From positions 19,581,006-19,645,005 of the forward strand of contig NC_083443.1 in the NCBI RefSeq assembly GCF_020745735.1: 64,000 nucleotides of DNA. Reading direction: 5' to 3'. The stretch is from Hemiscyllium ocellatum. Lineage: Eukaryota. Each line of letters starts with the position of its first letter. Positions within the stretch are counted from its first letter, which is position 1. The notes under the pieces were generated by a model, which did no database searches, was not told the origin of the DNA, and worked only from the letters and a program-made list of their open reading frames with translations. Position numbers and translations under genes: made by a program. Positions 10,459 through 63,785 of the stretch are shown one piece after another.

Positions 10459-10785
10459 GGGGGGCGGCACAGTGACTCAGTGGTAAGCGCTGCTACCTCA
10501 CAGCACCAGGGACCCAGGGTCAAATCCTGCCTTGGACGACTGTCTGTGTGGAGTTTGCATGTTTTCCCAGTATCTACATGGGTTTCCTCCAGGTGCTCTG
10601 GTTTCCTCCCACAATCCAAAGATGTGCGGTCAGGTGAATTGGCCATGCTAAATTGCCCATCGTGTAGGTTATTAGTCAGGGATGAATGTAAGGGAATGGG
10701 TCTGGGTGGGTTACTCTTCAAAGGGTTGGTGTGGACTTGTAGGTCTGAAGGGCTTGTTTCCACACTGTAGGGAATCTAATTAATT
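10459..10785 (+). mobile_element. HE1-type V-SINE
   Basis: tRNA-like head GGCGGCACAGTGACTCAGTGG, V-domain CTGTGTGGAGTTTGCATGTT..., CR1-like tail with (AATCT) end. Confidence 0.88.
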
Positions 10786-20875: not shown

Positions 20876-22139
20876 CCAAGTGGTGAGGCTGATAATTTGG
20901 GGATACCCACAACCATGACCAAGGAGGAAGAAGATGCTGACAGTGGGGCATGAAAGTGGTGACATTGGAGTTGGATAAAGACCTGGAAAAACAAGTGGCG
21001 AGCTCTGACAGCAGGTACCCGCTCTGACTTCCATCTCGGAAACTGACGCTATCTAGTTTCTTGGGGAAGGAGAAGAAAGTTAGGAGCTGTGTAGAAATGA
21101 GGTGAGATGAGCTCATACTGAGATGCAAATGCTTGGGAACCATTCATTAGCGAGATTCAGAGCTTGTTGTTTAAACCCTAAAGGGGAAATCAGAATTCTT
21201 TTCGATAATACCAAGAATCTGATTTTTCTGTTTTGCTGCATCTTCCCAACTTTCTTGCCAATGCCCACGCTGCCCATGGCACTGGAACATTCTGCCTCTC
21301 CACAGATGCTGCCTGACTGATTATTTCTGTTTTTAGTGCAGATTTTCATCATCCACAATATTTTGCTTTTGTCTTGATTTAAAATTCTTTGAGTCGAATG
21401 AAAAGTTGATGGTCAGAAAATACAGCACACAAAATCACAGCCTTGAGAACCTTCCAACATTGTTAACTGAAAGCATTTCCTTAACATTCATGATCGAAAC
21501 ATTTAACAATCGCTATTTCTGAACCTCACCAGCTCTGTTGGTCACAGAACAAAACGCTGTGGAGACCTGACAATTCGCCCTAATCCAGCCATTCAAAATT
21601 ATGCACAGGGTAATGGTATGAAAACTAACCTGAAACTGTTCTCTCACCACCTGAAATAGGATTAGTGACAGTATCCAAAAGCTCACAATACCTAAACAAC
21701 TGGTCGTCAATGGGTTCTTATTTCAAGATGAAACTTGTACTTACTCCTCAAGGGGATACCATTCCCCGTAACTGAAATTTAACTTGTTAAAACAGGTTTA
21801 GGATGTCTATTCTTTGGGGAATATAATCAGTGGGCACTATCGAATGGGAGTTATATCATCAACTCAGGACTGAGATGTATTATCATTTTTCTTTGGAAAT
21901 AATATCAACCTGAGTTTCTTACCATAAGCTCAATTTTAGGATGAAGGCATGGATGAATCATCTGGAAGACTGCAGAGTTTTCATTCACTTGATTCAGCTC
22001 TTCAAAAGACTGTGACTCACCTAGGAAGTTCTGTACAGACAGTGCAGCGTTCTCTGGAGGAGATTCTGTAAGGACTGCAGAAACTATCTCCATAGATGGT
22101 ACAAATCTTTCTGTACAAGAAGGCAATACGTGGTAAAGA

Positions 22140-22950
22140 TAGAGTCACAAAGTCATAGAATTGTATGGCTGTAAAACAGACCCTTCAGTCCAACTCGTTC
22201 ATGCTGACCAGACATCCCAATTTCATCTTGTCCTAGTTGCCAGCATTTGCCTCATATCCCTCCAAACCCTTCCTATTAAAATACCCATCCAGATGCCTTC
22301 TAAATGCTGTCATTGTACCAGCCTCCACCACTTCCTCTGGCAGCTGATTCCATAAACGCAGCACCTCTGTGTGCAAATGTTGCCCCTAGGTCTCTTTTAA
22401 ATCTTTTCCCTCTCACCTTAAACCTATGCCTTCTAGGTTTGGACTTGTCCACCTTGGGGAAAAGACTTTGTCTATTTATCTTATCCATATCCCTCAAGCC
22501 CTCCAACCCTGGCAACATCCTTGTAAATCTTTTGTGTACCCTTTAGAGTTTAACAACATCTGTTCTATGGCAGGGAGACCAAAATTGAATACAATATTCA
22601 AAAGTGGCCCAACCAATGTACTGTACAGTTGCAACATGACCTCCCACCTTCAGTGAGAAAGTGAGTACTGCAGATGCTAGAGATTAGTCAAGAGTGTGGT
22701 GCTGGAAAAGCATAGCATGTCAGGCAGTATTCGAGGAGCAGGAAAATCGGCATTTCATCAAGGGTTTTTACCCGAAATATTGATTTGCCTGCTCCTCGGA
22801 TGCTGCCTGACCTGCTGTGCTTTTCCACCACCACCACACTCTTCAGTCCCAATTTCTATACTCGATGCACTGACCAACAGAGGCAAGCATACCAACAGCC
22901 TTCTTCACCATCCTGTCTACCTGGGATTCCACTTACAAGGAACTATGTAC
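22140..22950 (-). mobile_element. CR1/HER1-type LINE 3' fragment with a nested family-A fold-back (about 22655-22840)
   Basis: Collinear with the 3' end of the long LINE at 31042. The nested insert has inverted arms and a short CTTCAGT duplication. Confidence 0.82.
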
Positions 22951-23579
22951 ACCTCTGAAACCTAGATGAGAACAAAGAATCTTCTGGACTCCCAATTCCA
23001 AAGTGGGAGAAGTTCCTATTATAGATGGATGCCTCTCCTGCATGAGCAGAACTTGCTGCTCCCTGTGAGCCCGTGAACTTTACTTGAGACTGCTTCAGGG
23101 TCAAACTGCTCATTGCCTGTTGAATGATCATTGTGAACCTTTCGTTTTGAGCACAACTTCTGTCGCTATTGCTGCATCCAGCAGAGACCTAAGATTGTTC
23201 CTTAGCAGAGGCAGTGCTGTTTGTTCAAGATTCTCACTTGTAGGACTTCACAGCCCTTTGGCAGCACAGTCAGGGTGTAGTCAGGTAGGAGCTGATCTGC
23301 AGAAGGCTAACATGCTGGCTGTTTGCAGGAGACCTTCCTTTCCACCTTCAATTATATCCTCAATTTTTCTAGAGTTTGCTGAAGAATTTCTTTCCTCATG
23401 ATTCCAAAGAGTCTTCTCAGGATTTTTACCTCATTGAGTGCTCATTGATGCCTCATAGTCATTCCAAGGTTGTTTGGAAAACATCATTTATACAGGATGT
23501 GTGTCTCCAATTTTATCGCCATGTTTTAGTGTGGGTTTAATGGATCTTCACACATGCTCAGGCTAAATTCCCAACTACT

Positions 23580-24240: not shown

Positions 24241-25207
24241 TGAAACTTGTCTTTACTGCTGGGAGCAAAATTATTAAGATATGATTCCTGAGGTTACACC
24301 ATGGCTTCCCTCAAAGTTTATCCCTCAATATTTATCAAAACTTATCATTGCACAAGTCACAAATGAGAAACCAGAAATTTTAATAATTAAATACCAAACA
24401 ACTCACTTGATATCCGCTTGTTCTCTCCCACACTCTCTCATAAAGTCCCCCAATTTCCAAACCTCTGCCAAGTCCTAATTAAATAAGACATAAATTAACA
24501 TTTCAGCAAGCAAATAAGAGATTGTAATGTTGTTGGCTCAGCCAGCCTGACAAAACATATGTTGGTAAATGTATAATAAACTCACCGAGAAACACAATAA
24601 AGGCAAAAATAGTGAGGATGCTGAGAATCCGAAACAAGCATAGAGAATGCTGGAGAAGTTCAGCAGGTCTGGCAGCATCTGTGAAAAGAGAAACAGAGTT
24701 CAAATGTGGTCTATGACTCCTTTACAGAATGGAATTGGACAGGAAGTGAAGGATTTAAAAGTTTTGCTTAAGGCCAAACAAGCTAATACCCTCCATGAAC
24801 CACAGAAGCACAGTAAGGAACAGGCAATGGAAATACTGGCAGACAGTGATTTATATCCACTTGCAGAGTGTGGGTATCACTGGCTGGGTCAGCATTTATT
24901 GCCAGCCTCTAGTTGCCCCTGGGAAGGTGGTAGTGAGCTGCACTCTTGAACCACTGCAATCCACCTGCTGTGAGTTAACCCACACTGCCACTGGGAAGTG
25001 ATTTCCAGGATTTTGACCCAGTGACAGTGAAGGAATGGCAAATATATTTCCAAGTCAGGATGGTGAGTGGCTTAGAAAGGAACTTGAAGGTGGTGGCATT
25101 TCCATGCAACAGTTGCCCTTGTCCTTCTAAATTGAAGTAGTCATGGCTTCAGTAGGTGCTGTCTGGGGATCTTTGGTGAATTTCTGCAATACATCTTGTA
25201 GATAGAA

Positions 25208-25549
25208 ATGATGTGGAGGTGCTGAGGTGGACAAAGTTAAAAATCACACAACACTAGGTTATAATCCAACAGGTTTATTTGGGAGCACTAGCTTTCGGGG
25301 TGCTGCTCCTTCATCAGGTATCAAATGGGGCAGGATCATAAGACACAGAATTTATAGCAAAAGATCACAGTGTCATACAATTAAAATGATATATCGTTTT
25401 AATTGCATGGCACTGTGATCTCTTGCTATAAATTCTGTGTCTTATGATCCTGCCCCACTAGTTACATGATGAAAGAGCAGTGCTCTGAAAGCTAGTATCT
25501 CCAAATAAACCTGTTGGTCTATAACCTAGTGTTGTATGATTTTTAACTT
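25208..25549. mobile_element. Spacer-less 316-bp fold-back of a third Penelope-type terminal repeat (family C) with hammerhead motifs on both strands
   Basis: Arms 25234-25391 and 25392-25549 are centred on GATATATC. CTGATGAaggagcagcaccccGAAAGCTA on the - strand, with a mirror copy near 25465-25495. Confidence 0.8.
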
Positions 25550-36394: not shown

Positions 36395-36690
36395 GTACAG
36401 TGGCTCAGTGGTTAGCACTGCTGCCTCATAGCGTTAGGAACCTGGATTTGATTCCAGTCTCAGGTGACTGTCTGTGTGGAGGTTACTTGTTCTCCCATGT
36501 CTGCGTGCGTTTCCTCCAAATGCTCCAATTTCCTCCCATAGTCCATAGATATGCAGGTTAGGTGGATTGGCCATGCTAACTTGCCCTGTAAGGTCCAGGG
36601 ATTTGCAGGCTAGGTGGAATAGCTGTGGGAAATGCAGGTGTAGAGTAGAGGGGTGAGGTTGGGTTAGATGCTCTTCAGTCCGACCAGTCT
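36395..36690 (+). mobile_element. Older V-SINE copy
   Basis: GTGGCTCAGTGGTTAGCACTGCTGCCTC head and V-domain. Confidence 0.8.
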
Positions 36691-36699
36691 TCCTCCTCT

Positions 36700-37330
36700 C
36701 ACCTTAAAAATATGCCTCTAGTTTTGAAGCCCCCACCCTAGGGAAAAGACCCCAATTATTCACCTTGTCCATGCCCCTCATGGTTCTATAAACCTCAATA
36801 GAGGCACCCCCCAACTTCCTATACTCCAGCGAAAAGCGTCCAAGCCTTTCCAGTCCATCCCAAACCCCCTGTTCCTGGCAACATCCTGGCAAGTTTTTTT
36901 CTGAGCCCTCTCCAGCTTAATAATATCCTTCCCATAACAGGGAGACCACAACTGGACACTCCAGAGGAGGCCTCACCAACGTCCTCAGGCCTGAAGGGTT
37001 ACATCCGAAATGCTGACTTCTCCACCTCCTGCTGCTGCCTGACTTGCTGTGTTCTTCCAGCCTCCTGCTTGTCTACTTTGGATTCCAGCATCTGCAGTTT
37101 TTTTGGTCTCTTCTTAACCACCCTATCTACCTGTAATGCAAATTTCAAAGAATTAAATACCTGTGCCCCTAGATTTCTCTGTTCTATAACACTATGCAAG
37201 GCCCTCCTATTAATTGTATAAGCCTTGTCTTTGTTTTTATTCCCAAAATTTAATACCGCCCGCACTTATCCAAATTAAACTCCATCTGCCAATCCTCAGC
37301 CCCATTGACCCAATTGATTAAGATCTCTTT
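36700..37330 (-). mobile_element. CR1-type fragment with a short Penelope-type terminal repeat nested at about 36985-37105
   Basis: LERLGRFSLEYRKL..IEVYR on the - strand. The nested piece reads CTGAAGGGTTACATCCGAAATG..CCAGCATCTGCAG. Confidence 0.7.
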
Positions 37331-37333
37331 GGG

Positions 37334-37790
37334 GTTTAGTGGCTAGCTGGTGTTTGTGGATGCAGATTGCCAGTTGTCTGCCACTGCACAGTGTTATGTG
37401 CAGTTTTTGCATGAATCTTGCAAATTATGTTAGCCACTAAACACCACGACTAGCTGCCCCTAGTAGCCACACAAACAGATGACAAGGGCCACATATTTGA
37501 CTGGGACAACACAACGATCATAGGACAAGCCAACCATAGGACAGTCATAGAATTTCTAGAAGCATGGCACTCATCCACAGACTCAATCAACAAACACATT
37601 GACCTTGACCCCATATAGCAGCCACTATACCGAACAACCAGAACTGCAGCCAAAAACAGAAATGCATCCAAATAAATTCCAGAAAACACAATACTGTAGG
37701 AAGCTCCAAAACACTGAAGATGTCACCTAGACAGGGGACGAAACGCCTGCAAATCAACTTCCCAGCTCAGCGAACATACCCACAACTATG
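37334..37790 (+). mobile_element. Penelope-like 3' fragment with a 5' inverted segment and hammerhead motif
   Basis: 37431-37790 is homologous to 18145-18500 (EFLEAWHSSTDSINKHIDLDP). 37334-37430 is upstream endonuclease sequence in reverse orientation. CTGAAGA..GAAACGCC at about 37713-37748. Confidence 0.8.
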
Positions 37791-37889
37791 ACGCAATACC
37801 CAGTTTCGATCCATTTGGCAAGTTCTCCCTGAATCCAGTGTGATCCAGTTTTATTCGTTAGTCTACCATGCAGAACCTGGTCAAAGTAG

Positions 37890-40241: not shown

Positions 40242-41249
40242 ATGAACTACAGCTGGGACTCTGTGGGTATGTCCCCCCATCGGAAGGTGTACACAGACCT
40301 TCAGGCTCGGACCCTGAGCTACTCCGTCCCTTCACTGCGAGCCCAGAACTGGTCCCGGACCAGCGTCCGCGCCGGCAAGGGGACGAGTGGCCGCGGCTTC
40401 AGTTCGGCAGCTCACCGGTCCTCGGAGATGGTGGAGTTCGCGGGTGAAGGCAAGGCGCGGGCCGCCAACGAGAAGGAGCAGATGCAGGGGCTGAACGACC
40501 GCTTCGCCGGCTACATCGACAAGGTCCGCCAGCTGGAGCAGCACAACAAGGCGTTGGAGGCAGAGATCACCGAGCTGAGGCAGAGGCAGACCACCTCCAG
40601 CCGCCTGGCCGGCGTCTATGAGCCGGAGATCAGGGAACTCCGCCTGCTCGTCCTGGACACGGAGAAGCAAAAGGGGCAGGTCTTGCTGGAGAGGGAGCGC
40701 CTGGGGGAAGACCTGCAGCAGCTCCAGGCCAAGCTGGAGGAGGAGACGCGGGTTCGGGACGAGCTCCAGGCGAGCATCGACCTGTGCAGGAAAGAGACGG
40801 GCACCTCTCACCTGGTGAAGCTGGAGCTGGAGAAGAAAGCCCAGGCGCTGGCGGATGAGATCGAGTTCCTGAAGAGCAACCACGAGGAAGAGGTGGCCGA
40901 TCTCTTCTCTCAGATCCAAGCCTCCCAGGTCGGGCTGGAGATGAAGGATTTCCTGAAGCCGGACCTCACTGGGGCCCTGAGAGAGATCCGGGCGCAGCTG
41001 CAGGGCTACGCCAGTGTCAACCTGCAGCAGGCGGAGCAGTGGTTCCGCTCCAAGGTGGCTCAACTTAACCAAGCTGCAGAAATGAACAATGAGGCCATCC
41101 AGGCGACCAGGCAAGAGATTAATGAGTACCGCAAGCAGCTCCAAACCAAGAGCATTGAGCTAGAGACGGTCAGGGGCACCAAAGAATCCCTGGAAAAGCA
41201 GCTCAGCGACATCGAGGAGAGGCACGATGCAGAACTAGTCCACTACCAG
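40242..41249 (+). CDS. NEFM-like: Neurofilament medium-like gene A, coding exon 1 (head plus most of the rod). Full CDS join(40242..41249,41339..41463,44808..46503), 942 aa
   Basis: ATG at 40242 in context AAGATGA, 62 nt after TATATAA. Translation MNYSWDSVGMSPHRKV...RAQNWSR...NEKEQMQGLNDRFAGYIDKVRQLE (IF coil 1A) and DFLKPDLTGALREIRAQL (NF-M-like linker). Ends CAG|GTAAGG at phase 0. Exact orthology to canonical NEFM is not established. Confidence 0.93.
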
Positions 41250-41338
41250 GTAAGGAGCACTGCCAGTTCAGCCCCGCTCTGCCTTCCCCTTGTCAGCTCT
41301 GAAAGTACAGGGTTTTTTTTTGTTTTTTTTAAAAACAG

Positions 41339-41463
41339 GATACCATTCAACAACTGGAAAACGAGCTGAGAAACACCAAGTGGGAGATGAGTCTCCACCT
41401 GAGGGAATATGAAGATTTGCTGAATGTCAAAATGGCTTTGGATGTGGAGATCGCCTCCTACAG
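41339..41463 (+). CDS. NEFM-like: Neurofilament medium-like gene A, exon 2 (coil 2B)
   Basis: Poly-T tract and CAG acceptor, then a 125-nt exon encoding [42 protein letters not shown], then AG|GTAAGG donor. Size and phase match the NEFM/INA second exon. Confidence 0.95.
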
Positions 41464-43574
41464 GTAAGGCGGTTGATAACATGCAGCATCACCTTCTCTG
41501 GAACTCAACAGAGTTGGGACCTTCAGGACGTCACACACTGCGTGGTCGCAGAATTCAAAGGGTGACTATTAAAATCTTAGAAGATCAAACATTTTTTTTC
41601 TATGAAAAAGTGCATGGTAAGCTGTCTCAAGGGTTAAATTCTTTGTGTCGGTGACTGAGTACCTCTGCTGGCCCCACTCAATTCGTTCAAGGATGTTATT
41701 GCACGCATCTGGACGAGGTTGGAATAAAGCCACAGCCTCCTGGCTTAAAGGGAGGACACTACCACTGCACCATTGCTGTGCATGATCAGACTGACATTAA
41801 CACTGCAAAGTTCACTCACGGCAGTGGGCTCGACACGTGTAAAGCAGTAAAGAATGAATATTTTCAGGGCTGATTGTTGATCGGTCTGGCCAGGAAAACT
41901 GAACAACTCGTTTTCCCGGTAAATGTCTAAATTTTTTGGACATGAATCCCACTAAAATAATGGGAATTATGAAAAGGCGTTAAAACTGCCGTGATCCTGA
42001 GAGGGAAAACAAACTCGAGAGCAAAACTGTACATCATTCAAGTCAAATACCTTTAATACCCCTCAACAAATCAGTAGAGAACCAAGCTGTGAGAATATTT
42101 CACTTGGGTAGTCCTGCACCAAAAATCACAGCAAGATCTTTTGTACCGAGAACCATGTCGATGAAGACTCACACAGGTTTGTAATTATGAAATATCCCGC
42201 ACGCAGATTATTCCCATAACAGCGTCTCTATTGATAGTCTCAAAGTCACAAAGGACAGTGAGCGCTGAAGGGGTTAAAGGGGATGTCAAGATGTTTGCAT
42301 CTCAGTCAATTAATCATTCCAACTTTGATGACCCGGGCGTTGTAAGGGACAGGCAGATTGCAAATGTCTTGCTAGGCAAGGCTGTCTGAAAGTAAATGAT
42401 AATCAAAGGAAAACAATATAGTATCAGAAAGTGCTGGGGGAACTCAGCAAGTCTTTCTGTGAGTAGCTGGAGAGAGAGAAACTGATCGTAAGCTGATAGT
42501 ATAAAGGAGCGCCTTGTTTCTTCACTGTAACCTTGACAGGTGACTGTGAGCTGTGCAGGGGAAAACACGATGCGGTGCTGGGATGCTGCAGTTTGGGAGG
42601 GGGAGGGGAGGACCTGGCTGAGAGCAGAATAGCAGCAAACTGTGGTTAGCGCTAGCGCGCCTTCTACTGGCGACGCTGTGCAGTGTTCTATAGCCCAGTC
42701 TGCACCAATTTGACAAGATCAGTCCCTCAGAAACATAGTGGGGCGAGGGAAGATAACATTTTCTTTAAACATTCACTTCCAATCCTCACAGTTCGGCTTC
42801 CACGGAAAGAATCAGGGAAGTGATTGGGAGAAGTAGGTGAAATCTTTTGATGCATTTTAGATTTACTTCAGTTGTGTTAGATCACAAACCTTTTCTTCAA
42901 ATTCAAGAAGTTTTATAATTCTTCTAATAAATGTCAAAGTGAGATTGAATTTTCTTAATTTCTCTACTGCAACTCTCATCAAAAATATAACAAGAATAAA
43001 AGCCACATTACTCAGGGTGTTCTACATTTTTGCAGGTATGTGTGAGTCGTGTCCATTGTCAATGGAGGTTATTTGATCAATTCACAATATAGTCCAACTA
43101 AGAAAACCCTCTAGTAATTAATAGGAAATGCAGAAGAATTTAGCAGGTCTGGCTACATGTATGATTTTGACTCTAATATGATTCTCCTTTGCAATTAAAA
43201 CAAATTGGATTACAATCATCTGCAATTAAACCACTTGTGTTTTATGTTGTATTCAGTATCAAAATGTACAGATATCTGAAGGAAGTCCATCAGGTTACTA
43301 TGTTACATTAATTCATTCACATTTTAAAATAAAGTGTTTCAAGATCAGTGCAACAGGGCTTTCTGAAATAAATGAGTTAACATAATGTGATTTTAAAATA
43401 TCTTAATCTGGAGCTGACTGCAGCTGGAGAACATCTATCTGGACTCTGGTAGGCTTGGATTTTTCTACGATTTTTCACTTTCAATCAAATAGTTTGTGTT
43501 TGCCCTTCAGACCCTCTAATCTTCAGTCAACAAGATCTGGATTTATCTGCACTTCACTCCCACACCCCCTCTAA

Positions 43575-44075
43575 AAAGACTTGCATTTATATAGCATTCT
43601 TCACAATCGCAAAAGCACTTGACACCAAATTTAAATGCTCTTTTGAGCATTGTTGCTAATGGTGCACTAATGGTGCTAATGGTGTACTATTGTTAGAATT
43701 CAGCAAACTCCCACAAATAACAGTGTGATCCGTCTTCTCAAGGGTACTGAAGGATGGGCAATATACAATGACCTTGCCAGAAACATGCATGTCCCAAGAA
43801 CAAAGAAGAAGAAAACAGATTTTTAGGGTGGTGTTGTGGAGCAAATGCCAGGCAATTCACCGAGTTAACTCTTCTCCATGTAGTGCCAGGGGCTCTTTTA
43901 TGTTCACCTGAGAGAGCAAACATGGCGGCAGTTTAATGCATCATCTGAAAAACAGTATCTCTGTCTTGGTGCCGTGCTAAATTGTTAGCTCTGATATTTG
44001 ATTTTGGTTGGTGAGGCAGGACCTGAATCCATAACATTGGGACTTAGAGGCAAGAACACTACCAACTGGGAATAG
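43575..44075 (-). mobile_element. Old Deu-domain-like tRNA-SINE in gene A intron 2
   Basis: The - strand reads TTTCAGATGATGCATTAAAC..CTCTCAGGTGAACATAAAAGAGCCCCTGGCACT, resembling the Deu domain (recalled by eye). The tail ends TATATAAATGCAAGTCTTTT. Confidence 0.5.
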
Positions 44076-44119
44076 AAGTGATAGACTTTTACATTTCAGA
44101 TTTGAGTTGATTATTCCTC

Positions 44120-44450
44120 ACAGAACCCCACAGCATGGAAGCAGGCCATTCAGCCCATCAAGTCCACACTGACTTGCTGAGCATCCCACCCAGACTCACC
44201 TCATTCCTGTAGCCCTGCATTTCCCATGGTTATTCCACTTAACCTACGCATCCCTGCGCACTACAAACAATTTAGCATGGCCAATCCACCTAACCTGCAT
44301 ACCTTTGTAGGAGGAAACCAGAGCTCCCCTGAGGAAACCCATGCAGACACAGGGAGAATGTGCAAACTCAAGGCAGAAAATTGCCCAAGGGTAGAATTGA
44401 ACCCAGGTTCCTGGCACTATGAGGCAGCAGTGCTAACCACTGAGCCATCC
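44120..44450 (-). mobile_element. V-SINE in gene A intron 2
   Basis: Reverse complement of the V-SINE head, V-domain and tail. Confidence 0.82.
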
Positions 44451-44807
44451 ATGTTACACACAGTGATATTGTTGAGGGGAATCTCAATGTATTGTGCAAA
44501 GGCCTAATGCTTTTATAAAATTAGGATAAGGAAAAGGAGACCGAGCCACTCCATATTACTTTCCTTCATGGATACTGACCAAGTGCAGCAGGGACAAGAG
44601 TCATGGGGCAGATCACTAGCTCGACTTGATGGTGCTTAGTGTGAAGGATGTAATACTAACTTGGTAAAAGTGAGAGAAAAGGAAATCATTTATTCATACC
44701 AAACTGTCCACTGCACCATTAGCATCATCAAGCATTGTTTAATTTGTGCACTCAGTAGTGTCATTCATCTTATAAGCACATAACGATGTTCCCTTTTCTC
44801 TAATCAG

Positions 44808-46503
44808 GAAACTGCTTGAAGGTGAAGAGACGAGATTCGGCTCAATTACAGGTAGCTACACTCCTCCTTCATATGCGTACAGACAAGTCCAACCCATGAC
44901 ACATTCAGTTTATGTCACGACAAAGGGCAAGGGCACCCCCACAAAGGCTGCCCCTCAATACAAATTTGTGGAAGAAATTATAAGTGAAACGACAAAGGAG
45001 GTTGACATAGCTGAGCTGGAAGACACCATCCAAACAGTTATCTCTGACGATGGTTCCGGTGAAAAATTTGACGAGGATGACCAAACCAAGCAGGAAGATG
45101 AAGAAGACAAAGATGAAGCAACAACAGCCGAAGCTTCAGATGAAGAGGAGGCTGAGAGGGAGAGCGAAACAAAAGAAGAGCGTGCAGAGGAAGAAGCTAT
45201 AGAGGGCAAAGAAGCTGAAGAGGATGGAACAATGACAACAGAAGAATCTGAAGAGAAAGAAAGTGCTGAAGCAAAAGAGAGTAATGGAGAAGAGACAACA
45301 GAAATAAAAGGTAAAGATGAATCTACAAAAACAAAAGAAACGGAAGGGCAAGATGCTGCTGAAATGAAAGATAATGTTGAAGAAGAAACTGCAGATTCTA
45401 GAGAAGAGGAAGAGAATACAGAAGCAAATGAACCTGAAGAACCAGAAACTACAGAAACAAAAGGCAAGGCTGGGCAGCAAGAAGTTAAAGACATTGCAGA
45501 GGAAAAAGCTCCTGAAAGAAAACAGGGCAAAGAAGACAGCACAGAGAGAAAAGAGTCTGCAACACAAGCAATAGCAGAAACGAAAACAGATGCTGAACAG
45601 GAAAAAACTGCTGGTGCAAAAGAGAAAGCCGAAAATGAGAAGCAAGCAGCTATTGAGAAAGATCAGACTGAACCAAGCGATGCTACAGACAAAAGAAATG
45701 GCAAGGAAAAGGAGGAAGACCATGTGACTCAGCAAAAGGAGGAGTCAAAAGGAACAAGCACAAATCAAAAAGATGAGCCCCACCCTGTGGCTGAAGAAAT
45801 TGCAGAAGAAAGTAAAGATACAAAGAAACCAGAGCTAGAGTCAGATAAAGTAAAAGAAAAGGCAAAAACAGATGCAAAAGAAGCTGCTTTTCAGGAATTA
45901 GCAAAAGAAAGTGAAAAGCAGACAGTTAAAGTTGAGAAAGTGCAAGCAAGTGAAGTAACAAAGGTGTCAGAAACTTCAGAGCAAACAAAAAAGTCTATCG
46001 AACAACCAAAGGAAGAAAAAGTCAAAGACAAAACAACTGATGTCCCTAAGAAGGAGGAGAAAGAAACAAGCAAAGACAACACTGTAACATTGGAAGAAAC
46101 ACAAACTGACAAAGATAGCGGCAAAAAACAGTCTAGCAAGGAAACTGAAGAAAAAATGGTGAAAACCTCAGAAGCAGAGAAAGTGCAAGAAAAAGTTACA
46201 AGTGATACTTCTGAAAGCAAGAGCACACAATCAATAGACAGAACAGCAGAGGCCATCATAAATGGCTTGGATATCAAAATAGATAAAGAAGATATAGAAG
46301 TTGAAACTGACAAGAAAACTACAAAAGTCTCAACACAGGTTGTGCAGAAAATTGCAGAGGAAACTATTAAAAGCACAGAAGAGATTGTGAAAATCACAAT
46401 GACCAGCACAATGAAAAAAGAAGTGATTGATGAAACAAAAAAGGAAGAAAAATCCATGTCAGCTTCATCATATACTCAAAGTGAAGCCAAAGGAAGTATA
46501 TGA
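44808..46503 (+). CDS. NEFM-like: Neurofilament medium-like gene A, exon 3 (rod end plus long Glu/Lys-rich tail)
   Basis: CCCTTTTCTCTAATCAG|G acceptor completes YR|KLLEGEETRF. NF-M-like YKFVEEIISET motif, acidic tail, INGLD motif near the C-terminus, TGA at 46501-46503. Confidence 0.93.
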
Positions 46504-46914
46504 GTGCCAGAAATAGCGATAGATCAGACAGTTTAAAAATGCATGTTACACAGTAAAGGTCTGGCACTTCAGCAATTTAAGAACATAGAAATGAAATGTA
46601 TGTTTCTGCAATAGGAAGTATGGGATTTTCTCAGGGGAATAATTTCAATTTTAATTTGTTGCTGCATGAATAATTGCACAATTAAACATTGCCATTGCCA
46701 TGGGGTGCTTACAAATATCTTTGACTTTGAGAAATAGTTTTGATGTCAATGGAATCAATACAACAGAAAAAGCCTTAATTTTCCTGTTGATTTTAATATA
46801 TTTAAATACATGCGCATTGCGTTTTAAAATTCAGACATTTTTGAGTCCTCAATGACACTTGTAATTGCTACGAGCATAATCGACTAACAAGGAGCAATCG
46901 ATATACCATTCACA

Positions 46915-46920
46915 AATAAA
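46915..46920 (+). terminator. Probable polyadenylation signal of gene A
   Basis: AATAAA about 410 nt after the stop codon, followed by a T/GT-rich tract (TTTATTTATTTTGGGATGTTTTGTCTG). Confidence 0.55.
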
Positions 46921-48919
46921 TGCACTTTGTCAAAGAATCTGTGTCAATACAAATTTATTTATTTTGGGATGTTTTGTCTGCTTAGAAAAACTTGGGACTT
47001 ACATTGTACATCTAAAACATTTTCCAAAGTATGACACAGCCAGCCAATATTTTTTTAAGTGTAGCCAATGCTAAAGCAAAAACAGCAGACAATTTGCTCA
47101 CAGCAAACTCTCTTAGACTCAATGTGAGTGATTCTTCCTCCTCCTCCTCCATAATACTGAGATTCTGCAGATCACAAACATTTGGACATCAAAATGATGC
47201 CTAATGCATTCCTAATTTCAAAATATATTTGCTTAGCTCAAGTACCATTAAACACCAACAATCAGCCTAAAAAAAAGACTCAGAAGATAAGAAGCAATTG
47301 AATGATATAGAATGAAGCTAGTTTCCACCAGAGACATAAAGTCACATGGTCATACAACATGAAAACAGACCCTTTGGTCCAACTGTTCCATACTGAACAT
47401 AATCGCAAACTAAACCAGTCCCACCTGACTGCTCCTGACCCATATCCCTCCAAACCTTTCCTATTCATGTACTGATTTAACACATAATCTATTCCATTAG
47501 GAGTCTATTCATTTACTGAATCATTTGAAGAAAAGAACAGAGAAACAAAATGTGTCCCTTTAAACATTCGATTTTATTAAGGGAATTTACTTCTTTGGTC
47601 ACTGGCCACAATCCAACTTCAAATCCAACACCTGAAATTCCTTTGCAAAGAACAATTTGTCCATTTTTAAATTTACTTGCTGACTGTCAGATGAGACAGT
47701 AAACACTGCAACTTAAGGCACTTATTGAAAGAAAAGTGGGTTAGATGTCACCATAAAGACTTCATCCCCACTTGTCTGAAAATAAATTGTAAGATGCTAC
47801 TTTTGAGCAACTGTAGTTTAATTTCTGCCTTAATGACATAAAATTAGCAGAATAACTCCAGAGTGTGGTTCTAAGCTGAAGTCTAAGGAGAACGCTGTGA
47901 TTCCTCTCAGACTCGACAATACAGGAATATTGATTGTTCTCTGGCTGATGCCTTGGAGTCAAGGTTAATGCAACAACTTCCTACTCATCTGTGTTTGATG
48001 GACATTTTCTGAGCACTCAGAATATCCTGAAACCTCCAACACGAATGGCACATCAAACTGCCTGAAACTCAAATAATGACAGCTTGGGTGATAGTTATAT
48101 CCAAAGGGATCCCTCAGTGAGGCAGTCACCCAGAGAAAGTTGGGTCAGGAAGGAAGGGGGGATGGCCCATTCGGCATGGATGTGCAGGTTCATGAAAGGA
48201 GGCTGTTAGCTGTTAGCTATCAGACCTGCCACAAGAGAGGGTTCACTTTCATTTAGTGTAACACACAGGAGTAATGGAAAGGAGGTTTTCCGCTAATGGT
48301 TGGCATTGAAAATTCAGGTCAGAGCAAAGACATGAGCTGAGCCCTGAAATGCATCTGGTTCCTGCAATGGCCCTGCATACTGCACACATTCACTGGTTAG
48401 CACTGTAGTTATGAACAGAGGTATAAAGAAAAGAGGGCTCTCTAAAATATGAAAGCTGCTTTTACAGTCAGGTAGTGTAAAAACAGTCTTGTTCTGCTGG
48501 CTTCAAATCAAAGTACTCTCCCTGACATCTGTACATGGTGACCACCCAATACTTTGCAGCCAATATCCTAATTTGCACCAAGCCCCATATTCACTGGCTC
48601 ACACAAGCTCCTGGTTCAGCTGTTTTTCAAATTCTCACCCTGATCTTCAAACCCCTGTCCTTGAATCTTACTGTGTGGCTCATTGCTCAATCTTACTGAG
48701 CAATGCTTATGCAGCAGCTTGCATTTACCATGATAAAGATTACATATAAATTTAAGTTGTTGTTCAAGATGCACTAATCTGAGATATGCCAGCCAGAATA
48801 CTGTACAGTAGTGTGAAGCTGTATTTGATGAGATTTTGTCAGGCGCTTTGCCGCCAACACCCAGTGTGTGACTTTCCCATTACTGAAAGCAGCCCTGTAA
48901 TAAAGAGCAGGGCAGATGT

Positions 48920-49128
48920 CCAAGAGTGTGGTGCTGGAAAAGCACAGCAGGTCAGGCAGCATCGGAGAAGCAGGAGAGTCGACATTTCGAGCATAAGCTC
49001 TTCATCAGGAATGTCGATGTTTCAAGCATGAGCTCACCTGCTCCTTGGATGTTGCCTGACCGGCGGTGCTTTGTCAGCACCACACACTTCGAGTCTGATC
49101 TCCAGCATCTGCAGTCCTCACTTTCTCC
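48920..49128. mobile_element. Family-A fold-back insertion
   Basis: Inverted arms, a - strand CTGATGAagagcttatgctcGAAATGTC motif and the tail GATCTCCAGCATCTGCAGTCCTCACTTTCTCC. Imperfect TSD GGGCAGATGT / GGACAGATGT. Confidence 0.78.
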
Positions 49129-50479
49129 ACGGGACAGATGTGACAAAACACTGGTCTCCTCACCAGCCAGCCTTCCTGAATTTGCCAGATTCGGGGCCTT
49201 CAGCTCATGGTACAGAAGCATTGCAAAGCTTCCCTGCCCCTCAGAGCCACAAGAGCCCACTGTACAAACTGGGCTTCATTTAGCAATTGCCAGCTAAGTG
49301 CAAGTGAGGACAACATCTGATCACCATCAATCTCAGACAGCACACCTTAAGAAGATGCATATTTTATAGGTATAAACTTTAGTACATTTTTGAATGTGTG
49401 GACTTCGCCTTTAATTCTGAATTCATTACCGCCCAGGTTTTGTTTTCTCTCCGCTTTCCGTCAGTGCTTGCTGCACCATGACTCAGCAGTTTAAAGATGT
49501 TTGAACCCAATTTGTATTCCACAGCACCATCTACTGACAAGAACCCCAAGTATCATTCTCAGCATTTACTGTGATCACTGAACATGCACAACAGTTTTAA
49601 TAATAAATTACTGTTGCCAAACATTCCACATTCACAGTTATCTGATATCTGTAACAGAGTTGTCCGAGACACAAATAGAATGAGGAGACAGCATGACTGA
49701 CTTCACAAGTTGATCACTTAAGTGAGGTCTTTGCTGACAGAAACTAAGGGATGCTGGTGGCTGATTACCAGAAGGGCAGCATGATCTGAATGTAACTGAA
49801 CTGCAGCACTATGACCTTGACATAACCTAGTGACTAAACCAATGTCTGTCTTTCTCTGAATTCAAATATATGCAACATATCATTTGAGACAATGGCCCTG
49901 ATTTTAACTCAATCCTCTGGATTGACTGGGTTGACTGCCTCAAACACCCTTTAACCAATATTTTAAAGCCAGAGTGGGTTTACTTGGGCTTGTTCTGGCT
50001 GACTTTGGCATTGCATCTACCATCTTCTGTTATTACTTGTCCCAAATAGACAAAGTTATTGGCTCATTTTACCGTAACTACTGTTTTAGACTTTTTAATG
50101 TTCATATGAACATAATTGAAGTGAATGGTGTGACATTGGAACAAGCCAATAACTTTCGTCTATTTAGAATAAATGATAACAGAAATTGGCAGAGATACTG
50201 CCGAATTTAAAGTAGGGATAGCATTATCCAGAAATTATTTTGTGAGGACAAATTTTGTGCTAACAAACTAAAACGCTCAACCTTGTGATAAAGAAAAGCT
50301 TCATTTTATGCTACATGATATCCATTTTCCTGCATTCCTCAGAAACCTGGACAATTACCAAGGGGCTGTGGAAGAAACTTAATGCTAAGAATGCTGAATG
50401 TCCTCATGGGAAATAGAAATTGACTGTAAATTTTGTAGCCATGAACTTGTGTGGTAAGAATCTGGCTGTAGTGCCTCTG

Positions 50480-51113
50480 AGTCGAGAGTGTGGTGCTGGA
50501 AAAGCACAGCAGGTCAGGCAGCATCTGAGGAGCAGGAGTTTCAACGCTTTGGGCAAAAGCCCTTCATCAGGAATGAGGCTGTGGCCCGAGGAGGTAGTGA
50601 GATGAATGGGAGGGGGGCTGGGGCTGGAGGGAGGTAGCTGAGAGTGTGATAGGTAAATGAAGGTGGGGGTAATGGTGATAGGTTGGTAGGGGAGATTGAA
50701 TCGGATAGACGAGAAGGAAGATGGATAGGTGGGACAGGTCATGAGGGTGGTGCCGAGTTGGAAGGTTGAATCTGGGATAAGGTGGGGGGAGGGGAAATGA
50801 GAAAACTGGTGAAATCCACATTGATGCCCTGGAGTCGGAGGGTCCCGAGGTGGAAGATGAGGCATTCTTCGTCCAGGCATCAGGTGGTGAGGGAGTGGCG
50901 ATGGAGGAGGCCCAGGACCTGCTTGTCCTTGGTGGAGTGGGAGGGGAAGTTGAAGTGTTCGGCTACAGGGCAGTGTGGTCGGTTGGTGCAGTTGTCTCAG
51001 AGATGTTCTCTGAAGCAGTCTGTAAGTAGGCGCCCTTTCTCCCCCAGTGTAGAGGAGACCGCATCGGGAGTAACAGATACAGAAAATGACATGTGTGGAA
51101 GCGCAGGTAAAAC
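50480..51113 (-). mobile_element. Penelope-like element fragment (same type as 38609-39244)
   Basis: FTCASTHVIFCICYSRCGLLYTG and downstream GIY-YIG sequence on the - strand, followed by the family-A terminal repeat with a decayed hammerhead. Confidence 0.85.
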
Positions 51114-51725
51114 TCATTGGAACCAATTCTGGAAAACGTCCCTGTTCTCTTAAGAAACTGAACTCAGAGCAATCACCAGAAGCTTGGAATAAATTTCAAC
51201 ACAGTCAAAGTTTTGAGCAATAGCCTAAGGTTATCTTAGGCCTATACATTATAATGGATACTACAGACATGTAGATCCAGAGCTGTTCCCGACACAACAA
51301 GGGTAATGCACAGAATCACATTATTACAATGCAGAAGAAAGCTATTCAGCACACTATGTACGCACCATCTCTCTGAATGAGCTTCATGACTTAGAGTCAT
51401 CCTTACACTTTTGATCCATAATCCTATACATTACTTATAATTAAATAATCATCTTCAAAGTCCTTCTGAAAGATTCAATTGAACCTATCTCCATGTCACA
51501 ACTGGGCAGTGCATTCCAGACCAGAACCACATTTGTTTTCACATATATGATGATGTGGTCACTTTAAAGAGGTTATTTGGCCCTTGGTTTGTTTTTGAAG
51601 AGAGATCATCATGGCAGAGATGCTGCAGGGCCTAGTTTAACAATGCAAAGGGAGTGGCCAGTTCTCCCAGTTCTGGATTTTTCTAGTTTGCTTTTAGCTG
51701 TAGCAGTCACAAGGTATGAGAGTCC

Positions 51726-52324
51726 GTTGTTGTGGTTCTGTTCGCCGAGCTGGAAGTTTTTGCTGCAAACGTTTCGTTCCCTGGCTAGGGAACATCATCA
51801 GTGCGGTGGGAGCCTCGTGTGAAGCGCTGCTTTGATGTTTCTTCCGGTATTTATATTGGTTTGTTCTTGCCGCTTCCGGGTGTCAGTTTCAGCTGCAGTG
51901 ATTTGTATCTGGGGTCCAGGTCGGTGTGTCTGTTGATGGATGTTCTTGCCATTTCCGGGTGTCAGTTTCAGTTGTAGTGGTTTGTATATGGTGTCCAGGT
52001 CAATGTGTCTATTGACCTGGACACCATATACAAACCACTACAACTGAAACTGACACCCGGAAACGGCAAGAACATCCATCAACAGACACACCGACCTGGA
52101 CCCCAGATACAAATCACTGCAGCTGAAACTGACACCCGGAAGCGGCAAGAACAAACCAATATAAATACCGGAAGAAACATCAAAGCAGCGCTTCACACGA
52201 GGCTCCCACCGCACTGATGATGTTCCCTAGCCAGGGAACGAAACGTTTGCAGCAAAAACTTCCAGCTCGGCGAACAGAACCACAACAATGGATACCCGAG
52301 CTACAAATCTTCAATCAGATTTTA
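51726..52324. mobile_element. Young, near-perfect fold-back Penelope-like insertion (282-bp arms, 6-nt loop, 32-nt tail)
   Basis: Arms 51723-52004 and 52011-52292 with no indels and loop GTGTCT. Perfect 11-bp TSD TATGAGAGTCC at 51715-51725 and 52325-52335. Confidence 0.93.
52211..52250 (+). ncRNA. Intact minimal type I hammerhead ribozyme motif (mirror at 51765-51804 on the - strand)
   Basis: GCA CTGATGA t GTTCCCT agcc AGGGAAC GAAA CGTT TGC: all core boxes, 7-bp stem II, palindromic ACGT stem III and 3-bp stem I. Confidence 0.82.
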
Positions 52325-52769
52325 TATGAGAGTCCAGGGGAGTTCTAAGCTTCAGTAAAGAATTTCTCTGACTTTTTTCTGAAATCTCTCTTTGGATGTT
52401 GTTCCCTTCTGCCTGTTAGAATCTGTGTTTGAATATGCCTTTATGGGATGTTTGGAACAGTTAGTTAGCAATAGTTACTGTATCAGGTTGGTTAAGTTTT
52501 CTAATAGTTAAGTGATTTTAAATCCTGCTTTCTTTTGTTTGTGTTTTAAATGTAGTAAATAAATTCTGCTTTGCTGAAAGCGGAGTGATTTGACATGTTG
52601 CATCATACCTGGAACATTCACTCACATCTGCCTTTAAAGTAAGAAAATGTTAGTGTCTAGGCTACTTCTTAAAATATTTTATGGGGTTCTGGCCTGGTCC
52701 ATAACAAAAACATTAACTTATTTTGCAAATCACCTTAAATCCTTGTTCTCGAACAATTCTGAGAGAGAA

Positions 52770-54480
52770 CAGTTTCTCCATATCTACTCTGTCACATTTG
52801 AAAACTTTAACCTCCTCTTCCCTCCAAAGAAAAAGGTCCCAACTTCTCAAATCTATCCTCATGATTCATCTTTCTTCTAAATCTTTTCTGCACATTCTCT
52901 AATGCATTCACAAGCTTCTTTTAGACTGGTGCCCAGAACTATACACCATACTCGAACTGAGATCCAACTGGTTATAGAGTCATAGAGTCGTACAGCACTG
53001 AAACAGACCCTTTGGTCCAACCATACCAAAGATAATCCCAAACAAAACTCATCCCACCTGCCTGCTCCTGGCTCATTTCTCTCTATACCTTTCCTATTTC
53101 TGTATTTACCAAATGTTATTTAAATGTTGTAATTGTGCCCACATGCATCACTTCCTCAGGATGTTCATTCCACTCTCTGTGTAAAATATTTGCCCCTCAT
53201 GTCTTTTTTAAATCTCTCTCCTCTCACCTTAGAAATATGCCCCCAATCTTGAAATTCCCTATCCTAGGGAAAAGACAACTGCCATTAATCCATTCTATAC
53301 CCCTCATGATTTTATAAACTTCAACAAGGCCACCTCTCAATCTCCTATGCTTCAGTGAAAAATGTCCCAGCTCTCTTTATGATTCAAACCCTCCATACCC
53401 AGCTACATTCTGGTAAGTCTCTTCTAAACCCATTCCAGTTTAATATCCTTCCTATAGCTGGGTGACCAGAACTGGCCTGTCCTTTGCAAGTTCATCATAA
53501 TCTCCTTGCTCTATGCTCCTACTAATGAAGCCTAGGATACTGTTCACTTCATTGACTGCTATCTCTACCTGTCTGGCCACATTTAATAACTTTAATGGCA
53601 CATTTGACCAGAAGTATCACCTCACACCTTACAACATTGAACATCATCCGTAAGCTACCTACTCATTCCCACCGGTTTTTTAATATCCTTGTGAAGTTCT
53701 CAAATCTCATCCTTACTACAGCCCTTCTAAGTTTTCTATCAAATGCAAAGTTTGAAATTGCCCCTGCACATTAAGGTCTAGGTTATTTACGTATATAAGA
53801 ATAGCGGGGGAGCTAGTACTGACCCCTAGAGGCAAAAACAGAACACGGCAGAGAAACTCAGCAGATCTTGTAGCATCTGTGGAGAGAGAAACAGAATTAA
53901 TACGTCGAGTCCAAAGATGGCTTCTCATTCCAATGCTGCTGAGTTTCCCCAGCACTTCGTTTCCGGTTTCCAGCATCCACAGTATTTTACATTTATCGGA
54001 CTCCTGAGAAACTCAACTACAAACTTTCTTCAGCCCAATAAGTATCCATTACCCATTATTCACTGTTTCTTATCAGTCAGCAAATTTTGTACCCACGTGT
54101 CCTCTTTATTCCACGTGTTATATCATTTTTCACAAGTCTGTTTTGTGATACAGAATGAAACAACTTTTGGAAGCACAGGTACACAACACCAACAGCGCTA
54201 ACATCATTAACCCTCTCTGTTACCTCCTCACAGAACTCCAGCATGACCTGAGGGGTAATTGTTTTACACAGAGACTGGTTCATGCGTGGAATGAACTTCC
54301 AGAGGAAGAGGCAGATGCAGGTACAGTTACAATGTTTAAAATATATTTAGATAGGTAAATGAATAAGAAATGTTTGGAGGGATATGGGCCAAGTGCAGGC
54401 AGGAGGGACTAGTTTAGTTTGGGATTATGGTCAGCATGGACTGATCGGACCGAAGGCTCTGCTTCTCTGATATGACTCTA
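52770..54480. mobile_element. Cluster of nested CR1-type fragments (including about 52975-53475 on - and 54240-54480 on +)
   Basis: (ATAGAGTC) tails, DLRGNCFTQRLVHAWNELPEE and VYLCFQKLFHSV remnants. Confidence 0.7.
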
Positions 54481-54912
54481 CATTCATTAAACCTGCTTTC
54501 TCCTTAAGAAATACTTGCTGGCTCTCCCAATCAGATTTATGGTCTGTCCCTGTGATTATTAATTCTAACTCAAATTATTGCTTCTGAAAGTTTCCCAATA
54601 CCAAAGCGACACTGTGTCAGTAATTTCTGGGCTCATCCTTACAACCCTTTGTGAACAAGAGGGTAAATATCCTGGAAGGGTAATTCAGCATTTATAAAGT
54701 GGAGAATTATTTTCTGCAAAAGTATTTTTATTGAAAACCAAAAATATTGATGTTTTTCCTAATTGAATCACAATGTTACCAAAGCAAAGAAACTAAATTA
54801 TCGAGGCATTTAGTGTCGCCCTTTGAATTGCTGAGCAGAATTGGAGTGCAGCATTAATATTCCCCTTCAGTAAGCGAAGCATCGATTTTGCACAGTCACC
54901 AGCAGCTCTCCT

Positions 54913-54919
54913 TATATAA
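54913..54919 (+). promoter_or_regulatory. TATA box of gene B
   Basis: CTTATATAAGG, at nearly the same distance from the ATG as the gene A TATA box. Confidence 0.7.
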
Positions 54920-54951
54920 GGCAGTGGGCGACTGAGGTGTAGCTGTACTCT

Positions 54952-54971
54952 GGCGCTGTCCAACTGCTGAA
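54952..54971 (-). promoter_or_regulatory. RE1/NRSE-like motif in the 5' UTR of gene B
   Basis: Reverse complement reads TTCAGCAgttGGACAGCGCC versus canonical TTCAGCACCACGGACAGCGCC: perfect right half, left core present, 1 nt shorter. Confidence 0.45.
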
Positions 54972-54973
54972 AG

Positions 54974-55981
54974 ATGAATTCGAGCAGGCAGTCTGTGAGC
55001 AGCTCTCCTTTTAGGAGAGTGTACTCAATCTCCTCTCGGAGATCGAGTCGGAATCTGGGCTCTCAGATCCCAACATTCAGCTCCCAGGTGTGGCCCAGAG
55101 ACACTTCCCACAGACAGGGAGGTCTGGCGGCGAGCCGAGAGTCCAGGCTGCGGGGAAATGTTGGGATCGGCCTCGGATATGACCAAGTGCTGGGCGCCAA
55201 TGAGAAGGAGCTGCTGCAGGGGCTGAATGACCGCTTCGCCAGCTTCATCGACAAGGTCCGTCAGCTGGAACACAGCAACAAGGCTCTGGAGGCAGAGATC
55301 ACCGAGTTAAGGGCAAGCCAAACCTCCCAGTCTGACCTCGCTCATGTCTATGAGCCAGAAATGACCGAGCTCCGGAACCTCATCCAGGAAAGTGAGAGGC
55401 AGAAGCTGGGTTTCCACTTGGACCGGGATCACCTGGAGGAAGATCTCCGCCGGTTGCAGAGGAAATACGAGGAAGAGAGACAGGTCCGACAAGAGGCTGA
55501 AGCCACTCTCCAGGCTCTGAAGAAAGACACAGAGAGTGTGCTCCTGACTAAACTGGAGCTGGAGAAGAAAGCCCAGGCGCTGGCGGATGAGATCGAGTTC
55601 CTGAAGAGCAACCACGAGGAAGAGGTGGCCGATCTCTTCTCTCAGATCCAAGCCTCCCAGGTCGGGCTGGAGATGAAGGATTTCCTGAAGCCGGACCTGA
55701 CTGGGGCCCTGAGAGAGATCCGGGCGCAGCTGCAGGGCTACGCCAGTGTCAACCTGCAGCAGGCGGAGCAGTGGTTCACAGCGAGAGTCGCCAAGCTCAA
55801 TGATGCAGCAGCCAGCAACAGGGAGACTCTGCAGAAGACCCGGCAGGAGATCAGTGAGTACAACCGCCAGCTCCAGTCCAAGAACCTGCAGCTGGAGACA
55901 GTCAGAGGGAGGAAGGAGTCTTTGGAGAAACAGCTGGATGAGGTTGGAAGCAGACACCGCGCTGAATTAATGCGGTACCAG
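54974..55981 (+). CDS. NEFM-like: Neurofilament medium-like gene B, coding exon 1. Full CDS join(54974..55981,56074..56198,63002..63785), 638 aa
   Basis: ATG in AAGATGA context, 61 nt after TATATAA. Contains SPFRRV, SSQVWPR and NEKELLQGLNDRFASFIDKVRQLE. Ends CAG|GTGAGG. Same 1008-nt length as gene A exon 1 CDS. Confidence 0.92.
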
Positions 55982-56073: not shown

Positions 56074-56198
56074 GACACCGTTCAACAATTAGAGAACGAG
56101 CTGAGACACACCAAACAGGAGATGGCTCATCAACTCCGGGAGTATCAAGATCTGCTCAACGTCAAACTGGCCCTAGATGTGGAGATCACCTCCTACAG
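56074..56198 (+). CDS. NEFM-like: Neurofilament medium-like gene B, exon 2
   Basis: TTTGTTTTCCAG acceptor, then 125 nt encoding [42 protein letters not shown], then AG|GTGAGT donor. Confidence 0.95.
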
Positions 56199-63001: not shown

Positions 63002-63785
63002 GAAACTCTTGGAAGGTGAGGAGGCAAGATTTGGTTCAGATACTGATCACTTCAGTCTGTTATCCTCGACATGCAAGGAACCTCAAAGTATGACACAATT
63101 GTTTCATGTCTCAACTAAGACAAAGGCTACCCCTGAGTTCAGGTTTGTAGAAGAGATTGTAAGTGAGACGGCAAAGGAAATTGACCTGGCAGAGCTTGAA
63201 GATGCTTATATGAAAATGAAACCTGGCCAACTCTACGATGAAGGATTTGAGGAAAATAAATCAACGACAGAAGAGGAGGAAGAAGAAAGTGAAGAGGGGT
63301 TATCAGCTCCAGACATAGGTGTGGGAAGAACCACTGATACAAAAGACAAGGCAGGAGAACTATCAAAAGGACTTAAAGAAACGTCAACCACTGAAGCAAA
63401 CGATGGAGAGAAAGGGGTTGAGGCCAAAGAAGGAGAAGAAGGTACTGAAGCCAAAAAGAAGGAAGAAGTAAAGGATGTTGTTCAGGCAAAAGAAAAATCC
63501 AGTGAAGGAGAGACTGTTCAGGCAAAAGCGGAAGCTGTGAAAGGAGCAGCTGCTATAGCCGAAGAGGAAGACATTGGGGAGCAAGGTGTTGGATCAAAAC
63601 CAAGTGAAATGGAAGGAAAAGCTGGTGAGACAAAGGAAGAGGCTGCGGAGGAAAGAACCATGAAGGCTGGTGGTAATAAAGAAACACAACTTCAGGAACA
63701 GACAAAAGGCCAAAAAGCTTTGAAGACAAAAGAAAAAGAAAGTAAGAAAGATGATGAAAAGGAAAGCAAAGAAAATAAAAAATGA
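63002..63785 (+). CDS. NEFM-like: Neurofilament medium-like gene B, exon 3 (rod end plus shorter acidic tail)
   Basis: CTAAT branch-like motif, pyrimidine tract and AAG|G acceptor complete YR|KLLEGEEARF. Contains FRFVEEIVSET motif and a Glu/Lys-rich tail. TGA at 63783-63785. Confidence 0.9.

Follow-up and report, generated by a model that had tools for sequence, protein, structure and literature searches.

A 228-nucleotide island in two tandem neurofilament-type genes of Hemiscyllium ocellatum that very probably evolves in concert by recurrent gene conversion

A 64,000-nt stretch of the genome of the epaulette shark Hemiscyllium ocellatum (Orectolobiformes; contig NC_083443.1, positions 19,581,006 to 19,645,005 of the forward strand), referred to here as the window, contains two tandem intermediate-filament (IF) genes, A and B, which lie on the same strand, have a like three-exon structure and encode proteins of 942 and 638 amino acids. 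The question raised by this locus is how two paralogs that are strongly diverged over most of their first exons can carry, at the same position, a short internal piece that is almost identical. An initial annotation, made from the sequence alone, had described the piece as a 225-nt tract and proposed recent or recurrent interlocus gene conversion. The comparisons reported here make it very probable that a 228-nt island evolves in concert by recurrent interlocus (non-allelic) gene conversion between A and B. The two copies of the island are as follows.

40818..41045, plus strand: putative conversion tract, gene A copy; 228 nt, with private differences G40820 and C40967; edges placed where sites switch between species-concordant and paralog-concordant.
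55550..55777, plus strand: putative conversion tract, gene B copy; 228 nt, edges placed by the same criterion.

Alignment of positions 40621-41245 with 55353-55977 showed that 224 of the 225 bases of the core (40821-41045 and 55553-55777) are identical. The single mismatch, C40967 versus G55699, changes CTC to CTG and is synonymous, as both codons specify Leu. The core begins 579 nt past the ATG in each gene (40242 and 54974), and the repeat search placed the two copies at an offset of 14,732 nt. The identity, the synonymous difference and the equal ATG offset given in the initial annotation were thus reproduced by alignment and by the open reading frame (ORF) coordinates. The left edge of the whole tract was found to lie 3 nt earlier than that of the core, giving 226 identical bases out of 228, with a second mismatch (G40820 versus A55552) that is private to copy A. 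The edges of the identity block are abrupt in the alignment. Outside the tract, exons 1 and 2 differ at 357 of 908 aligned nucleotides (60.7% identity), and the flanking peptides of A and B that had been quoted as strongly divergent were correct. When the differing sites were permuted over 20,000 rounds the longest run with no more than one mismatch was 45 nt, while a run of 225 nt containing no more than a single difference had an analytic probability of approximately 2e-47. A repeat search of positions 35000-64000 linked genes A and B solely by the tract pair and by a weaker pair at the start of coil 1A.

The position of the tract on the rod was obtained by alignment to solved fragments of vimentin. 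From coil 1B it takes in the final ~33 residues, or the final third of that segment; it then runs through linker L12 and ~30 residues into coil 2. The earlier assignment to the end of coil 1B and L12 was therefore right for both segments but left out the start of coil 2, and the accompanying statement that this region is normally more variable than the rod ends was contradicted by a family alignment of NF-M-type proteins, in which the protein is well conserved here.

The DNA of both genes was compared between H. ocellatum, Chiloscyllium punctatum (older assembly), Rhincodon typus and the chimaera Callorhinchus. The first exons used outside the window were:

Whale shark (R. typus), locus L001: A exon 1 at 10001-11044; B exon 1 at approximately 24367-25368.
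Brownbanded bamboo shark (C. punctatum), locus L004, older assembly: A at 21478-22512; B at 37014-37835.
Elephant shark (chimaera), locus L002: A at 10001-11077; B at 22279-23313.

Within a genome the A and B tracts differ at one of 225 positions in H. ocellatum, four in C. punctatum and one in R. typus. Orthologous tracts are further apart, with 11-12 differences between Hemiscyllium and Chiloscyllium and 23-27 between either of these and Rhincodon (of 225). The six shark sequences contain 32 variable tract sites, 26 of which have A equal to B in each species; none is paralog-concordant and the remaining six are private. Immediately beside the tract the pattern is reversed: at 40801-40817 and 41046-41063 all A copies agree with one another and all B copies agree with one another in the three species. 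The switch from species-concordant to paralog-concordant sites falls at 40817/40818 and at 41045/41046, in all three species alike.

The synonymous divergence (dS) between A and B within a genome was 0.020 in the tract and 1.5 or more, and saturated, in the flanks. Between species the dS of the tract was 0.38-0.46, against 0.31-0.59 for the ortholog flanks, and the ratio of nonsynonymous to synonymous divergence (dN/dS) was 0.13-0.16 in the tract and 0.17-0.19 in the flanks. The homogenisation of synonymous sites means that selection at the protein level alone cannot account for the identity of the two copies. In maximum likelihood trees the flanks were grouped by paralog with 100% support, while the tract was grouped by species. 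The approximately unbiased (AU) test rejected the paralog tree for the tract (difference in log-likelihood 119.6, p = 1.5e-5) and the species tree for the flanks (difference in log-likelihood 498.8, p = 2.8e-5). The proposed tract-versus-flank tree comparison, carried out on the three orectolobiform sharks, consequently gave paralogs that group within species for the tract and not for the flanks. Of the two forms of conversion that had been offered, recent or recurrent, the recurrent one is favored, since three species are each near-identical in one and the same stretch, which diverges between them.

The chimaera carries an A/B pair in the same tandem arrangement, and the duplication that gave rise to A and B must therefore be older than the chimaera-elasmobranch split. 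Its two tracts are only 72% identical, with a dS of 1.7, like the flanks of the same pair. As the tract has not been homogenised in the chimaera, the island is younger than that split. When changes were polarised with the whale shark as outgroup, the two H. ocellatum copies had no fewer than five substitutions in common that are derived in this species, and the two C. punctatum copies no fewer than two that are derived in theirs, indicating that each lineage was homogenised after Hemiscyllium and Chiloscyllium separated. These two lineage events, together with at least one more on the whale shark branch or on the common stem, give three or more homogenisations. In H. ocellatum there are 1-2 unshared tract differences compared with 5-7 shared derived ones, from which we infer that the last homogenisation fell within approximately the last 10-20% of the time since the split from Chiloscyllium. 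Four of the five shared changes derived in H. ocellatum are AT to GC, as GC-biased conversion might produce, but the GC content at third codon positions is high in the flanks of gene A as well.

These observations are consistent with the following course of events. A 228-bp piece of exon 1 would first have become common to A and B in the orectolobiform lineage. Breaks in one copy would afterwards have been repaired off the neighboring copy, so that one tract was repeatedly overwritten by the other, and new substitutions in the tract would have been either lost or spread to both genes. For the fixed edges we prefer the reading that the island limits itself, being probably the sole stretch long and similar enough to pair; heteroduplex would probably be unable to extend outward past the island into flanks that are 60-68% identical, and every event would then cover the same island. 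Efficient recombination requires an uninterrupted identity of at least approximately 200 bp in yeast and in mouse cells, and a longer one in humans (PMC3924818, PMC3966225), and human paralogs that undergo conversion usually have a global similarity of approximately 92% (PMC3966225). At 228 bp the island corresponds to about one minimal efficient processing segment (MEPS).

Several points weigh against recurrent conversion as described here. The founding transfer would have taken place between sequences that were approximately 70-75% identical, which is unlikely by the usual homology rules (approximately 92%, PMC3966225). Both H. ocellatum copies are known from assembled sequence and sampled 31-mers and not from junction-spanning molecules, and DNA of both copies came from three species only, one of them represented by a short-read assembly. 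The sites that separate A-type from B-type outgroups are split in the tract between 13 that are A-like and 9 that are B-like, so that neither gene stands out as the donor; the first ~40 bases are clearly A-like, and the tract tree is unstable among outgroups. The explanation of the fixed edges by a homology island is itself an inference, and selection on a chimeric protein could look alike.

The start of coil 1A is the other part of exon 1 in which A and B are more alike. At 40457..40595 on the plus strand gene A is 83% identical to 55189-55327 of gene B. The A versus B identity of this stretch is 80-90% in H. ocellatum, 96-100% in the whale shark and 89-93% in the chimaera, and over the 45 nt at 40479-40523 gene A of the shark matches gene A of the chimaera without a single difference (100%). 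In H. ocellatum the similarity is mostly deep conservation, with no young tract here. The whale shark equivalent of 40455-40570 contains A/B identical runs of 54, 18 and 38 nt, and may represent a second conversion tract specific to that species.

Outside the orectolobiform sharks, the A and B proteins of Carcharodon (P0152 versus P0162 and P0164) are 87% identical in the tract and 69-76% beside it, and the left 20 residues are still type-specific. This protein pattern is a hint that lamniforms may have a conversion tract which is older, or shorter. A protein search at fragment length returned no further shark exon 1 sequences.

A third gene, C, is located downstream of B and outside the window (P0166, P0162, P0161, P0163; loci L003 and L005). 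Within a species the rods of B and C are 93-100% identical, compared with only 27-57% for the heads and tails. The C. punctatum C protein has 27% identity in the head and 46% in the tail to the B protein of C. plagiosum, and its rod equals the rod of its own B save for one residue, with species-specific residues in common. In Carcharodon, Heptranchias and Pristiophorus, likewise, B and C of one species have rods with 86-98% identity, but rods of the same type are only 76-88% identical between these species, and the heads and tails are still recognisably orthologous. At the DNA level the Heptranchias B and C genes are 92-100% identical over approximately 600 nt ending at the 3' end of exon 1, with 38-72% in the intron beyond. 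A search with the head of gene C matched Carcharodon only. On these comparisons conversion appears to be pervasive in the A-B-C cluster, with the A/B island as its smallest and most sharply bounded instance. A further sequence resembling an IF exon 1 was observed approximately 15 kb downstream of Heptranchias gene C (L005:25306-26348), so that the cluster of this species may comprise four genes.

The explanation that competes most closely with conversion acting on homology alone retains conversion as the source of variation but has selection maintain the island and set its edges, as an identical central rod module would aid co-polymerisation if A, B and probably C are co-expressed subunits. 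Edges that are the same in three species would follow from this, as would the placement of the tract across L12 and the adjoining parts of coils 1B and 2, the identity of the whole rods of B and C while heads and tails diverge, and the persistence of the island at about the length of one MEPS beside flanks far under the usual homology threshold. However, no result requires such selection: the dN/dS of the tract is close to that of the flanks, and the chimaera pair functions without homogenisation. Selection of this kind, and with it the compatible co-assembly surfaces that the initial annotation had offered as a purpose, is not needed to account for the pattern; it is possible, but we regard it as doubtful. 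An extended form, in which the A-B-C cluster is a system of shared rods with different ends and selection keeps conversion active, holding the island just above the minimal length for recombination, is more speculative still and rather unlikely. B and C would in that case share the whole rod and A only the junction of coil 1B, L12 and coil 2, leaving heads and tails free to specialise.

The explanations that dispense with repeated copying fare considerably worse. Repeats shared by paralogs are a classic site of polishing errors and the H. ocellatum copies were read from an assembly, so one copy might have been overwritten with reads of the other. The assemblies of R. typus and C. punctatum nevertheless contain the tract as well, each in a version peculiar to the species, and the exon 1 proteins obtained from the old short-read assembly of C. 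punctatum are the same as those from the new, independent one. Two further H. ocellatum samples, neither of them the probable source of the assembly, have read sets in which 0.90-1.00 of the sampled 31-mers of both stretches were present, and reads of a 60%-identical paralog would not be mis-mapped into identity; an artefact is accordingly very improbable. Equally improbable is constraint at the nucleotide level since the duplication, by an RNA element or an exonic regulatory sequence and with no copying. Such constraint does exist in these genes, as the 45 invariant nucleotides at the start of coil 1A demonstrate, but the tract evolves between species at the neutral rate (dS approximately 0.4) and is only 72% identical between A and B in the chimaera. 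An Rfam search with the tract gave no family above noise, and the predicted fold of the tract was no better than those of shuffled sequences (z = -1.03), both of which count against this explanation. If conversion had taken place just once, in the ancestor of the orectolobiforms, and the copies had since drifted apart slowly without recurrence, that one founding event would account for the common edges. This scenario is hard to reconcile with the 26 of 32 variable sites that are equal in A and B within species and differ between them, among them changes that postdate the Hemiscyllium-Chiloscyllium split, or with a within-genome dS about 20 times under the between-species dS, and we consider it highly unlikely. 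Recurrent conversion between A and B is thus the explanation that we prefer.

Interlocus conversion between tandem paralogs is known from the human gamma-globin genes HBG1 and HBG2, the red and green opsins, and CYP21A2 and CYP21A1P. Conversion of the HBG1/HBG2 type resembles the A/B case in that the copies are tandem and on the same strand, the tract is sharp and near-identical at synonymous sites, and trees of tract and flank conflict, with paralogs grouped within species. It differs in that the A/B flanks, at 60-68% identity and with saturated dS, lie far under the similarity of approximately 92% that is usual for converting paralogs (PMC3966225). The A/B island is also only 228 bp, or about one MEPS, and has the same edges in three species of two families. 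The paired receptors Siglec-11 and Siglec-16 are an example of concerted evolution restricted to a domain. As with A and B, homogenisation recurs in one protein module and the remainder of each gene diverges. The Siglec module, however, is a complete exon or domain whose common ligand is obvious, whereas the A/B tract lies inside one exon and encodes a linker together with portions of the two coiled-coil segments beside it. Conversion is likewise known in the clusters of keratin and keratin-associated protein (KRTAP) genes, which resemble A and B as IF-related tandem clusters undergoing conversion and differ in that they are type I and II keratins or KRTAPs and occur in mammals. Literature searches found no earlier report of such conversion in type IV neuronal filament genes or in cartilaginous fishes. 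The mechanism is of a known kind, and the case is notable for the small and isolated island and for the age of the paralogs.

The remaining features of genes A and B in the window are given below.

40242..41249, plus strand: gene A exon 1; head and rod to mid coil 2, GT donor at 41250; IF rod domain PF00038, E = 6e-76.
41339..41463, plus strand: gene A exon 2; 125 nt, AG acceptor and GT donor, frame continuous.
44808..46503, plus strand: gene A exon 3; rod end (KLLEGEE) and a 557-amino-acid glutamate/lysine-rich (E/K-rich) tail with a conserved C-terminal block.
54974..55981, plus strand: gene B exon 1; PF00038, E = 9e-72; equal to the annotated H. ocellatum protein P0280 across all 336 amino acids.
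56074..56198, plus strand: gene B exon 2; 125 nt, from ORF and splice sites.
63002..63785, plus strand: gene B exon 3; rod end and a 253-amino-acid E/K-rich tail.

Gene A is colinear with its 954-amino-acid C. punctatum ortholog P0001, with 93% identity, and its C-terminal block is common to the A-type orthologs of chimaera, rays and sharks. The 638-amino-acid length of gene B is that of the Chiloscyllium B orthologs P0173 and P0281. An annotated H. ocellatum protein matches gene A with 100% identity over 240 amino acids. The public annotation of H. ocellatum appears to break gene A into P0264, a 369-amino-acid model of exons 1-2 that starts at the second Met, and a separate 535-amino-acid tail ORF, and its model of B (P0280, 671 amino acids) exits the tail exon shortly before it ends and continues in an exon approximately 22 kb downstream. 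In the whale shark the head of B exon 1 (L001:24367-24450) contains an in-frame stop and there is no ATG at the homologous start; the remainder of the exon is open and under purifying selection, and the public model starts 3.8 kb upstream. This anomaly may stem from a fault in the assembly, from the use of a different first exon or from decay of the gene in its early stages. The window also contains, between the two genes, a near-perfect inverted repeat at 51723-52292, with 282-nt arms of 99% complementarity and a 6-nt spacer. Two short direct repeats, with 83% and 72% identity, are located at 36688-36845 and 53213-53371, upstream of A and B respectively, and are not equally far from the two start codons. 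Fragments of dispersed repeats are the probable explanation, with a common regulatory piece as the less probable alternative.

The family membership of A and B was assessed from domain content, gene structure and phylogeny. The IF rod domain is present in both first exons, as listed above, but exon 1 of neither gene matched the NF-M head domain PF04732 in a Pfam search. The tails of both genes contain 21% E and 15% K, and the number of KSP (Lys-Ser-Pro) repeats in them is zero. Among named relatives the highest scores were those of NF-M chains, at 52-55% identity, and no verified NEFH sequence was found among the named representatives. A long first exon reaching from the head to coil 2, followed by two late introns, is typical of NEFM and INA, and the splice sites of A and B give the same arrangement, with a long first exon through coil 2 and only two introns, both late. 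In a tree of rod domains the cartilaginous-fish genes formed a clade, with 99% support, together with long-tailed, unnamed genes from the coelacanth and from ray-finned fishes, and this clade was the sister of canonical NEFM. Judged by these sequence characters, A and B are type IV (neurofilament-type) IF genes that are NF-M-like yet fall outside canonical NEFM, in a sister lineage. They resemble canonical NEFM in having three exons, both introns late in the rod and a long E/K-rich tail that opens with a KFVEEI-type motif, and differ from it in the lack of the PF04732 head and of KSP repeats and in their separate clade. Sharks also hold a separate canonical NEFM on another chromosome (P0177, P0174), which, together with the absence of PF04732 and KSP repeats and the sister-clade placement, ruled out canonical NEFM orthology. 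The term neurofilament paralogs used in the initial annotation is consequently apt with regard to the rod domain, the gene structure and the NF-M-like relatives, but not in the sense of canonical NEFM.

The A/B island illustrates, in a clean natural setting, how little homology, and in how isolated a position, can suffice for concerted evolution. It measures 228 bp in paralogs that predate the chimaera-shark split and whose silent sites are saturated outside it, which bears on the minimal-homology rules for ectopic recombination, and it has been homogenised repeatedly with fixed edges across two shark families. Trees or ortholog calls that are made from this part of the rod will mislead, and short-read assemblies and annotations of the A-B-C cluster are error-prone. 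For filament biology, the locus flags an NF-M-like cluster of cartilaginous fishes in which the rods are kept alike while the heads and tails differ.

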